The notes below the pieces were generated by a model, which did no database searches, was not told the origin of the DNA, and saw only the letters and a program-made list of their open reading frames with translations. Below, piece after piece: positions 52,367 through 53,724 of a stretch of DNA of 64,000 nucleotides. The DNA lies in NCBI RefSeq assembly GCF_011386835.1, contig NC_088802.1, positions 52,328,001 to 52,392,000 of the forward strand, written 5' to 3'. Made by a program: the position numbers and the translations under genes. Positions within the stretch are counted from its first letter, which is position 1, and every line of letters starts with the position of its first letter. The stretch is from Chrysemys picta bellii. Lineage: Eukaryota.

Positions 52367-52393
52367 CTTTCTTCTCTTCTTTTTCTTTTGTAG
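52367..52393 (+). other. 3' splice acceptor of the KCNJ16 coding exon (exon starts at 52394)
   Basis: Long polypyrimidine tract ...ctttcttctcttctttttcttttgtag, ending 74 nt upstream of ATG 52468 and 110 nt upstream of ATG 52504. Confidence 0.8.
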
Positions 52394-52400
52394 ATTTCAA

Positions 52401-52421
52401 ATGAGGAGAGAGAACAATTAG
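52401..52421 (+). other. Out-of-frame uORF MRRENN* in the KCNJ16 5' leader
   Basis: ATG AGG AGA GAG AAC AAT TAG read directly; weak Kozak context (C at -3). Confidence 0.6.
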
Positions 52422-52467
52422 CCATTGGAACCACGGACGTGTCCAGTGAGCTGAGGCCACAAGACGG

Positions 52468-52491
52468 ATGACTGAGCGCTGTGATCACTAG
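52468..52491 (+). other. In-frame uORF MTERCDH*, probable ancestral KCNJ16 start interrupted by TAG
   Basis: ATG at 52468 is 36 nt upstream of, and in frame with, ATG 52504; TAG at 52489-52491. Confidence 0.75.
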
Positions 52492-52503
52492 AGGCTTGTA
52501 AAA

Positions 52504-53724
52504 ATGCAAAGAAATAAGCTCAGCTACCCAAATTCTTCTCAAGAATGCACCACAGTGAGGGCAAAAAAAATGCAGAAGAGATTTCTCCACAAGGATGGCA
52601 GCTGCAATGTGTATTTCAAACACATCTTCGGAGAATGGGAGAGCTACGTGGCTGATATTTTCACCACATTAGTGGACATCAAATGGCGCCACATGTTTGT
52701 GATATTCTCTTTATCTTACATTCTTTCTTGGCTGTTCTTCGGCTTGGTCTTTTGGCTTATAGCAATCCAACATGGAGATTTAGTACATGATGAAGGAATA
52801 ACCCCTTGTGTTGCTAAGGTGCACAGCTTCACAGGAGCATTCTTATTCTCACTTGAAACCCAGACGACCATAGGCTACGGCTTTCGTTGTGTCACTGAAG
52901 AGTGCTCTGTAGCGATCCTCATGGTGGTTCTACAGTCGGTATTAAGCTGTATAATTGACACATTCATTATTGGAGCTGCCTTGGCTAAAATGGCCACCGC
53001 TCGAAAGAGAGCTCAGACCATCCGCTTCAGCTACTATGCCACCGTAGGCCTAAGAGATGATAAACTTTCCCTCATGTGGCGCATTGGTGATTTCCGGCCA
53101 AACCACATGGTTGAAGGCACAGTAAGAGCTCAGCTTCTGCGCTACATGGAAGATAAGGAAGGGAGAATGACAATGGAATACAAGGACTTGAAGTTACTAA
53201 ATGACCAGGTCATACTTGTTACACCAGTGACCATCGTACATGAAATTGACCATGACAGCCCTTTATACGGTCTAGATCGGAAAGCTTTGGCCAAAGACAG
53301 TTTTGAAATCTTGGTTACATTTGTCTACACTGGAGATTCAACTGGAACTTCACACCAGTCGAGAAGTTCATACGTCCCCCGAGAAATCCTTTGGGGACAC
53401 AGGTTCAACAATGTCTTGCAGGTGAGGAAAAAATACTACAACGTGGATTGCCTACAGTTTGAGGAAACCACAGAGGTTTACGCTCCCTATTGCAGCGCAA
53501 AGCAACTGGATAGGAAGGAACATGAATGGAACAGAACTAAGAAAACATTGGACAGAGGAACAAGTACATCAACACTGGAGGTCAGAGATACATCATTTAA
53601 GGCAGTTGCCCTCATCAGCAGTTCTGAAGATCCAGAAGATCTAATGAAAGCCGTCAACCAAGATTCTAGAGAACTGCCTTATCAGAAAGATCCACTGACC
53701 TTAAACAGAATCTCCAAGATGTAG
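52504..53724 (+). CDS. KCNJ16: Inward-rectifier K+ channel Kir5.1, single coding exon, 406 aa from the first ATG that is open to the stop
   Basis: TIGYG selectivity filter (ETQTTIGYGFRCVTEEC) and two hydrophobic TM segments. Kir5.1-type stretches HKDGSCNVYFKHIFGEW, KMATARKRAQTIRFS, WRIGDFRPNH and TGDSTGTSHQSRSSYVPREILWGHRF match human Kir5.1 as I recall it. Confidence 0.97.
   Translation: MQRNKLSYPNSSQECTTVRAKKMQKRFLHKDGSCNVYFKHIFGEWESYVADIFTTLVDIKWRHMFVIFSLSYILSWLFFGLVFWLIAIQHGDLVHDEGITPCVAKVHSFTGAFLFSLETQTTIGYGFRCVTEECSVAILMVVLQSVLSCIIDTFIIGAALAKMATARKRAQTIRFSYYATVGLRDDKLSLMWRIGDFRPNHMVEGTVRAQLLRYMEDKEGRMTMEYKDLKLLNDQVILVTPVTIVHEIDHDSPLYGLDRKALAKDSFEILVTFVYTGDSTGTSHQSRSSYVPREILWGHRFNNVLQVRKKYYNVDCLQFEETTEVYAPYCSAKQLDRKEHEWNRTKKTLDRGTSTSTLEVRDTSFKAVALISSSEDPEDLMKAVNQDSRELPYQKDPLTLNRISKM

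Follow-up and report, generated by a model that had tools for sequence, protein, structure and literature searches.

In the genome of Chrysemys picta bellii, the reading frame of KCNJ16, which encodes Kir5.1, is preceded by an in-frame ATG that is followed after only seven codons by a TAG stop. This arrangement raises the question of whether the short upstream frame is an error or private allele of the sequenced animal, a chance feature of the leader, an element of translational control, or what is left of a former protein start. An examination of a 64,000-nucleotide stretch of DNA containing the gene (the window) points strongly to the last of these: a change of TAY to TAG in ancestral turtles very probably turned the old start into an upstream open reading frame (uORF), and a Met codon downstream took over. 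The features concerned are as follows.

10988..11038, + strand: 3' part of 5'UTR exon A, with the donor AAAG/gtaagg after 11038 and uORF starts at ATG 11020 and ATG 11029
12366..12502, + strand: optional 5'UTR exon B, with the donor TTCAG/gtaata after 12502; its 5' limit is approximate
52394..52503, + strand: leader part of the last (coding) exon, 110 nt, behind the acceptor ...tttgtag at 52387-52393; transcript contigs match from 52392-52394
52401..52421, + strand: uORF1, MRRENN then TAG, in another frame than the CDS and 7 nt behind the splice acceptor
52468..52491, + strand: uORF2, MTERCDH then TAG, the probable relic of the ancestral CDS start; TAG 52489-52491 lies on TAT (Tyr) of owl and AAT of alligator
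52492..52503, + strand: spacer of 12 nt, four probably formerly coding codons R L V K, homologous to RLVS of alligator and RPVN of owl
52504..53724, + strand: KCNJ16 / Kir5.1 CDS, 406 aa, whose start is probably an ancestral internal Met; IRK and IRK_C domains

The window protein contains the Pfam domains IRK (residues 29-165, E 1.5e-56) and IRK_C (residues 173-339, E 2.3e-58), and the K+ selectivity filter T122 I123 G124 Y125 G126, which lies in the window sequence ETQTTIGYGFR, is invariant among 20 aligned orthologues. Nearly all named proteins among the 120 matches listed are inward rectifier potassium channel 16, with Mauremys mutica as the top match (98% identity) and mammals at 72-76%, and the KCNJ16 chains of the PDB are matched with E 2.7e-189 compared with 6e-108 for Kir2.1. 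These comparisons indicate an orthologue of KCNJ16 and not of another Kir. A protein identical over all 406 aa is already present in public collections, where it sits in a 31-member cluster of turtle KCNJ16 sequences whose emydid members Trachemys, Emys and Terrapene likewise have 406 aa. The entire CDS is contained in the last exon, the 5' exons being non-coding (transcript contigs join 11038, optionally by way of 12366-12502, to 52394), and no further long open reading frame was found besides KCNJ16 within the 64-kb window.

Despite its early stop, the gene had originally been judged functional, and this assessment is supported by the state of its core. When 900 nt of the window sequence were compared with eight other species, dN/dS was 0.03-0.11 (the range for comparisons outside Emydidae, that is, with the remaining turtles, alligator and owl), and no stop codon was found in this core in any of 10 species. 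With the core frame intact and dN/dS this low, a pseudogene was rejected. Global alignment identities of the introns to Emydura, alligator and owl (about 0.46-0.49) were set aside as alignment noise. A separate observation concerns the codon at 52957-52959 (..SCIIDTFIIG..), the TM2 rectification-controller site, which in alignment A1 specifies Asp in all turtles, crocodilians, birds, lizards, the snake, monotremes and Xenopus, and Asn in marsupials, placentals and the caecilian; Asp at this site is thus no peculiarity of the Chrysemys genome.

Read from ATG 52468-52470, the upstream frame gives M T E R C D H, TAG at 52489-52491, the four codons R L V K, and then ATG 52504; further upstream it is closed by a TGA at 52447-49. 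Several statements of the original prediction can be read directly from these letters: ATG 52468 is in frame with the 406-aa open reading frame and separated from it by the TAG, removal of the stop would give 406 + 12 = 418 aa, and ATG 52504 has a better Kozak context (GTAAAAATGC, A at -3) than ATG 52468 (AGACGGATGA, C at -3). Two further arguments did not survive. The agreement of this total with a 418-aa mammalian protein is a coincidence, given that a 3-residue indel is needed and the C-terminal tails differ in length. The ungapped match of the YP pair to mammalian YP20-21 is likewise accidental, as in the gapped alignment the N-termini of mammals and sauropsids are offset by this 3-residue indel. 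In these comparisons rodent, cetacean, marsupial and monotreme orthologues took the place of the human sequence.

At the DNA level, each codon of the upstream frame can be aligned with a codon of the N-terminal coding sequence of alligator (MKMTEHSSGHNRLVS, MKMTEH...) and owl (MRKMTEQSGRYRPVN, MRKMTEQ...), and the segments ATGACTGAG and AGGCTTGT are nearly unchanged among turtles, alligator and owl. In the protein alignment, the N-termini read MKMTEHSSGHNRLVSLQGNKL in alligators, MRKMTEQSGRYRPVNIQGSK in birds and ..GSSYR[IV]VN.. in monotremes and therians, and the upstream frame of the window (MTERCDH, stop, RLVKMQRNKL) matches alligator, bird and mammal N-termini residue for residue. The position of the TAG is occupied by AAT in alligator and by Tyr in owl (TAT), passerine, monotremes, marsupials and placentals. 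Because Tyr is found at this site in all of the latter groups, a single TAY-to-TAG change is the simplest history, and the proposed conversion of a Tyr codon into a stop is thereby upheld. The position of the working turtle start, which is ATG in all turtles examined, corresponds to CTC (Leu) in alligator, ATA (Ile) in owl and Val or Ala in placentals, and to Met in lizards, the snake and marsupials. Since alligator, owl and placentals have no Met at this position, their proteins must start upstream of it.

The KCNJ16 genes of crocodilians and birds (Alligator sinensis 424 aa, Strix uralensis 429 aa, passerines 426 aa; P0003, P0005, P0007) thus offer the closest comparison with an uninterrupted frame. 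Their CDS is orthologous and confined to a single exon, the proteins are 80-83% identical to the turtle protein, and the genes have the splice acceptor and uORF1 in common. Unlike the turtle gene, they have an open frame, TAT or AAT in place of the TAG, and no Met at the turtle start. The frame of the alligator and bird orthologues is open through the ATG homologous to 52468, as would be expected if other sauropsids had retained the longer N-terminus. The further proposal that ATG 52468 itself was the ancestral start stands with respect to homology and needs adjustment with respect to position: this codon is the second or third Met of the archosaur orthologues, whose annotated start lies 2-3 codons further upstream (MKM.. 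or MRKM..).

The interruption is widespread among turtles. Besides the window, the same TAG, the 7-codon uORF and the same downstream ATG are present in eight other turtle assemblies (Trachemys, a second emydid, Mauremys, two of Gopherus, two of cheloniid sea turtles and the pleurodire Emydura), so that nine TAG-bearing sequences from at least seven species are available. In these nine, the uORF2 peptide is MTE[RH]CDH, or MTEHRDL in Emydura, and its stop ends exactly 12 nt before the main ATG. Pelodiscus (a softshell, Trionychia) has ATA for the upstream ATG and AAG for the TAG, together with the same downstream Met start. All listed turtle KCNJ16 protein models are 392-409 aa long, and those read or aligned start at the Met of ATG 52504, except that the model of Lepidochelys olivacea starts 17 residues later and that of Pelusios is a fragment without a start. 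The existing models of Mauremys mutica (XP_044837525.1, 409 aa), Trachemys scripta elegans (XP_034646444.1, 406 aa) and Emydura macquarii (XP_067403400.1, 401 aa) share the start at ATG 52504 and record only the short protein.

Because the TAG occurs on both sides of the deepest split among living turtles, the most parsimonious origin of the stop is in their crown ancestor, with one trionychian and one pleurodire representing their groups at the DNA level; Pelodiscus would then have lost both the upstream ATG and the TAG later. The crown ancestor of turtles lived on the order of 200 million years ago. Three explanations had initially been offered for the short frame, and the occurrence of the same TAG in eight other turtle assemblies singles out the one that assumed a truncation fixed in the lineage.

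The course of events suggested by these comparisons would have begun with the change of a Tyr codon from TAY to TAG in the ancestor of living turtles, at about the 8th codon from ATG 52468 and the 10th-11th from the archosaur start. By parsimony, a Met codon probably already stood five codons downstream of the TAG, and it would have become the only usable start. Turtle Kir5.1 would consequently have lost 12 residues from its N-terminus when counted from ATG 52468, and 15-16 when compared with the alligator and bird proteins, and the old start would persist as a 7-codon uORF ending 12 nt before the working AUG. On the basis of frame and annotation, we infer that ATG 52504 is this working start, in agreement with the earlier proposal that the protein start had moved to Met13: the TAG stops the upstream frame, and turtle models start there. 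Leaky scanning is probably the route by which most ribosomes arrive at the working AUG; it is more plausible than re-initiation because the context of the relic AUG is weak and the spacer measures only 12 nt.

The relic frame is present in mature mRNA. The mature leader includes 52394-52503 with the upstream ATG and the TAG, and contigs from two transcript-like runs (X15 and X16) span 52394-52585 without a difference at either. In X15, which comes from a close relative of the window's species, exon A is spliced to 52394: the loose end of this RNA-like contig equals window 11006-11035 exactly and is joined to 52392/52394. In X16, depth is ~545 in the exon vs ~30 in the intron (18-fold). Two transcript contigs of Pelodiscus (L005 and L007) match 11010-11038; bases 24-162 of L005 then match 12366-12502 at 81% and are joined to 52392 onward, and exon B is skipped in L007. 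The coordinate 10988 given for exon A marks the reach of the 51-base loose end of a transcript contig and not the true 5' limit of the exon.

Altogether, the leader holds at least four short uORFs: exon A contributes two, and uORF1 (at 52401) and the relic uORF2 follow in the last exon. The uORF from ATG 11029 crosses the splice junction, and its TGA shares bases with the ATG of uORF1 (..AAATGA..). The ATG, length and stop of uORF1 are kept in cryptodire turtles, Pelodiscus (MRREHV), alligator (MRREND) and owl (MNKENK), with alterations by a 4-nt deletion in Trachemys and a 14-nt deletion in Emydura, and uORF1 may represent a conserved regulatory uORF of sauropsid KCNJ16. Between 52457 and 52458, 11 bases (CACTGAGCTGA) are absent from the window and from the second emydid assembly (L011), and these bases are present in Trachemys, Mauremys, Gopherus, Caretta, Emydura and run X16; their presence or absence changes the frame relation of uORF1 to the CDS.

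Given this setting, uORF2 might be more than a remnant, namely a damper or regulator of Kir5.1 translation on which selection has acted and which turtles have kept for that role. Such a role would fit the identity of ATG, TAG, length and 12-nt spacing in all nine TAG-bearing sequences including the pleurodire, and it would suit a leader with several other short uORFs, one of which (uORF1) is conserved between turtles and birds, so that translational control appears to be a general function of this leader. However, we regard it as unlikely, because divergence in the 36 formerly coding bases is close to that of synonymous sites: 6/36 differ between the window and Emydura, against a dS of 0.245, and 9/36 (a hand count on the alignment) between the window and Pelodiscus, against a dS of 0.316. 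Translational damping by uORF2 is therefore unsupported by the conservation of these 36 bases. On the TAG-bearing branches, disruptive changes to the ATG or TAG numbered 0 against ~2.3 expected, which is not significant (P about 0.10) in a test of low power; with Pelodiscus, which lost both codons, included, 2 were seen and 3.2 expected. The expectation is a Poisson estimate on a third-position tree, and as this 300-site tree misplaces Pelodiscus, only its total length was used. Neither the divergence of the 36 bases relative to synonymous sites nor the Poisson estimate, both of low power, gave a signal of selection on uORF2. Slow turtle evolution predicts the retention of uORF2 and is enough to explain it without selection, and on this evidence uORF2 appears to be a neutral relic and not a regulator kept by selection.

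A bolder extension, to which we attach little probability, is that the conversion of coding sequence was not neutral, in that additional uORF-based control of Kir5.1 translation has been gained and kept for ~200 million years, or that the loss of the N-terminal motif altered Kir4.1/Kir5.1 regulation. If the former were true, the stack of uORFs could couple channel synthesis to stress-dependent initiation in anoxia or hypercapnia; if the latter, channel regulation would have shifted with the loss of a conserved, Tyr-rich N-terminal motif, in a lineage that is extremely tolerant of acid-base disturbance.

It is also conceivable that the TAG is read through or recoded and that a full-length N-terminus is still made from ATG 52468, the frame being otherwise open from this codon and the flanking codons being little changed among turtles. 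This seems very improbable, however, in view of the neutral rate at which the former coding stretch evolves and the loss of the upstream ATG in Pelodiscus. To our knowledge, the bases that follow the TAG (AGG) form no known read-through context.

Other upstream ATGs in the leader, and the Met found at the Met13 position in lizards, snakes and marsupials as well, could suggest that ATG 52468 was never a start, that ATG and TAG form a chance uORF in an ordinary 5'UTR, and that translation always began at Met13. Yet the turtle stretch is homologous codon for codon to archosaur coding sequence, and alligator (Leu, CTC), owl (Ile, ATA) and placentals (Val or Ala) must start upstream of that position, which makes this history exceedingly unlikely; on the codon-level homology, a chance uORF was rejected.

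That the TAG reflects a mistake in sequencing or assembly, or a null or hypomorphic allele private to the animal sequenced, had been entertained at first; this has next to no probability and was rejected, as the codon is carried by nine sequences from at least seven species (the window and eight other turtle assemblies) and appears without difference in contigs of four further independent runs, two of them (X7 and X10) from other samples with the window's species label and two (X15 and X16) transcript-like. One of these runs also bears on the sequence behind the working start. Relative to the window, X7 has 52510 A>G (Arg3Gly) and 52520 T>G (Leu6Arg), the same state as in the second emydid assembly (L011), which places two amino-acid differences in a span of 11 bases, in a gene that is otherwise 99% identical. 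The new N-terminus of the window protein is variable.

With the conversion of the old start into a uORF and the takeover by the downstream Met as the preferred reading, the consequences for the channel can be considered. The lost segment would belong to the poorly conserved extreme N-terminus, so that the channel core would be unaffected, and the loss of 12 residues presumably had no functional consequence. Mammals conserve the lost motif (MSYYGSSY..), and it may have a function that turtles have given up. In the Kir4.1/Kir5.1 structures (PDB 9ma5, 9mae, 9mag, 9mai and 9mak), window residues 20-341 correspond to chain residues 11-332 (E = 2.7e-189). The deposited KCNJ16 chains (320-337 aa) start ~10 residues before window residue 20, and the lost segment lies outside them; because they stop short of the extreme N-terminus, they say nothing on the role of the 12 lost residues.

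The opposite end of the protein is unstable in turtles in its own right (window 53695-53724, compared with the ends of L001, L002, L005 and L008). Alligator and owl end in ESQI, the tail reported to interact with PDZ proteins. A 9-nt deletion is common to the emydids, whose tail reads ...ISKM, the tails of Mauremys, Gopherus and Caretta read ...AKSKI or ...AKSTI, and Emydura has a 24-nt deletion and retains ESQI. In Pelodiscus, the Gln codon of ..LPYQKD has become a stop (CAG>TAG), so that the protein loses its last 17 residues, and the Chelonoidis model likewise ends in ..LPY.

The short turtle protein is already annotated. In the titles and abstracts of the literature, nothing was found on uORFs of KCNJ16 or on the origin of the short turtle start. 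For annotation, the start shift confirms that turtle KCNJ16 models of this short length are correct and do not represent incomplete predictions. For the channel itself, turtles serve as a natural experiment, suggesting that Kir5.1, while staying under strong purifying selection, can do without its first 12-16 residues. Practical consequences would be small unless uORF2 or the lost motif proves regulatory.

The rescue of an early nonsense codon by a downstream in-frame AUG, with the old start becoming a short uORF, is a known kind of event. Turtle KCNJ16 appears to provide a clean and datable case in which a gene survived such a mutation because a pre-existing in-frame Met took over. It shares with the known rescues a stop only a few codons into the frame, an in-frame Met shortly downstream and a uORF with a weak Kozak context. 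Unlike those, which are disease alleles or polymorphisms, the turtle change appears to be fixed across an entire reptile order, and it affects a tail of the channel that looks dispensable.
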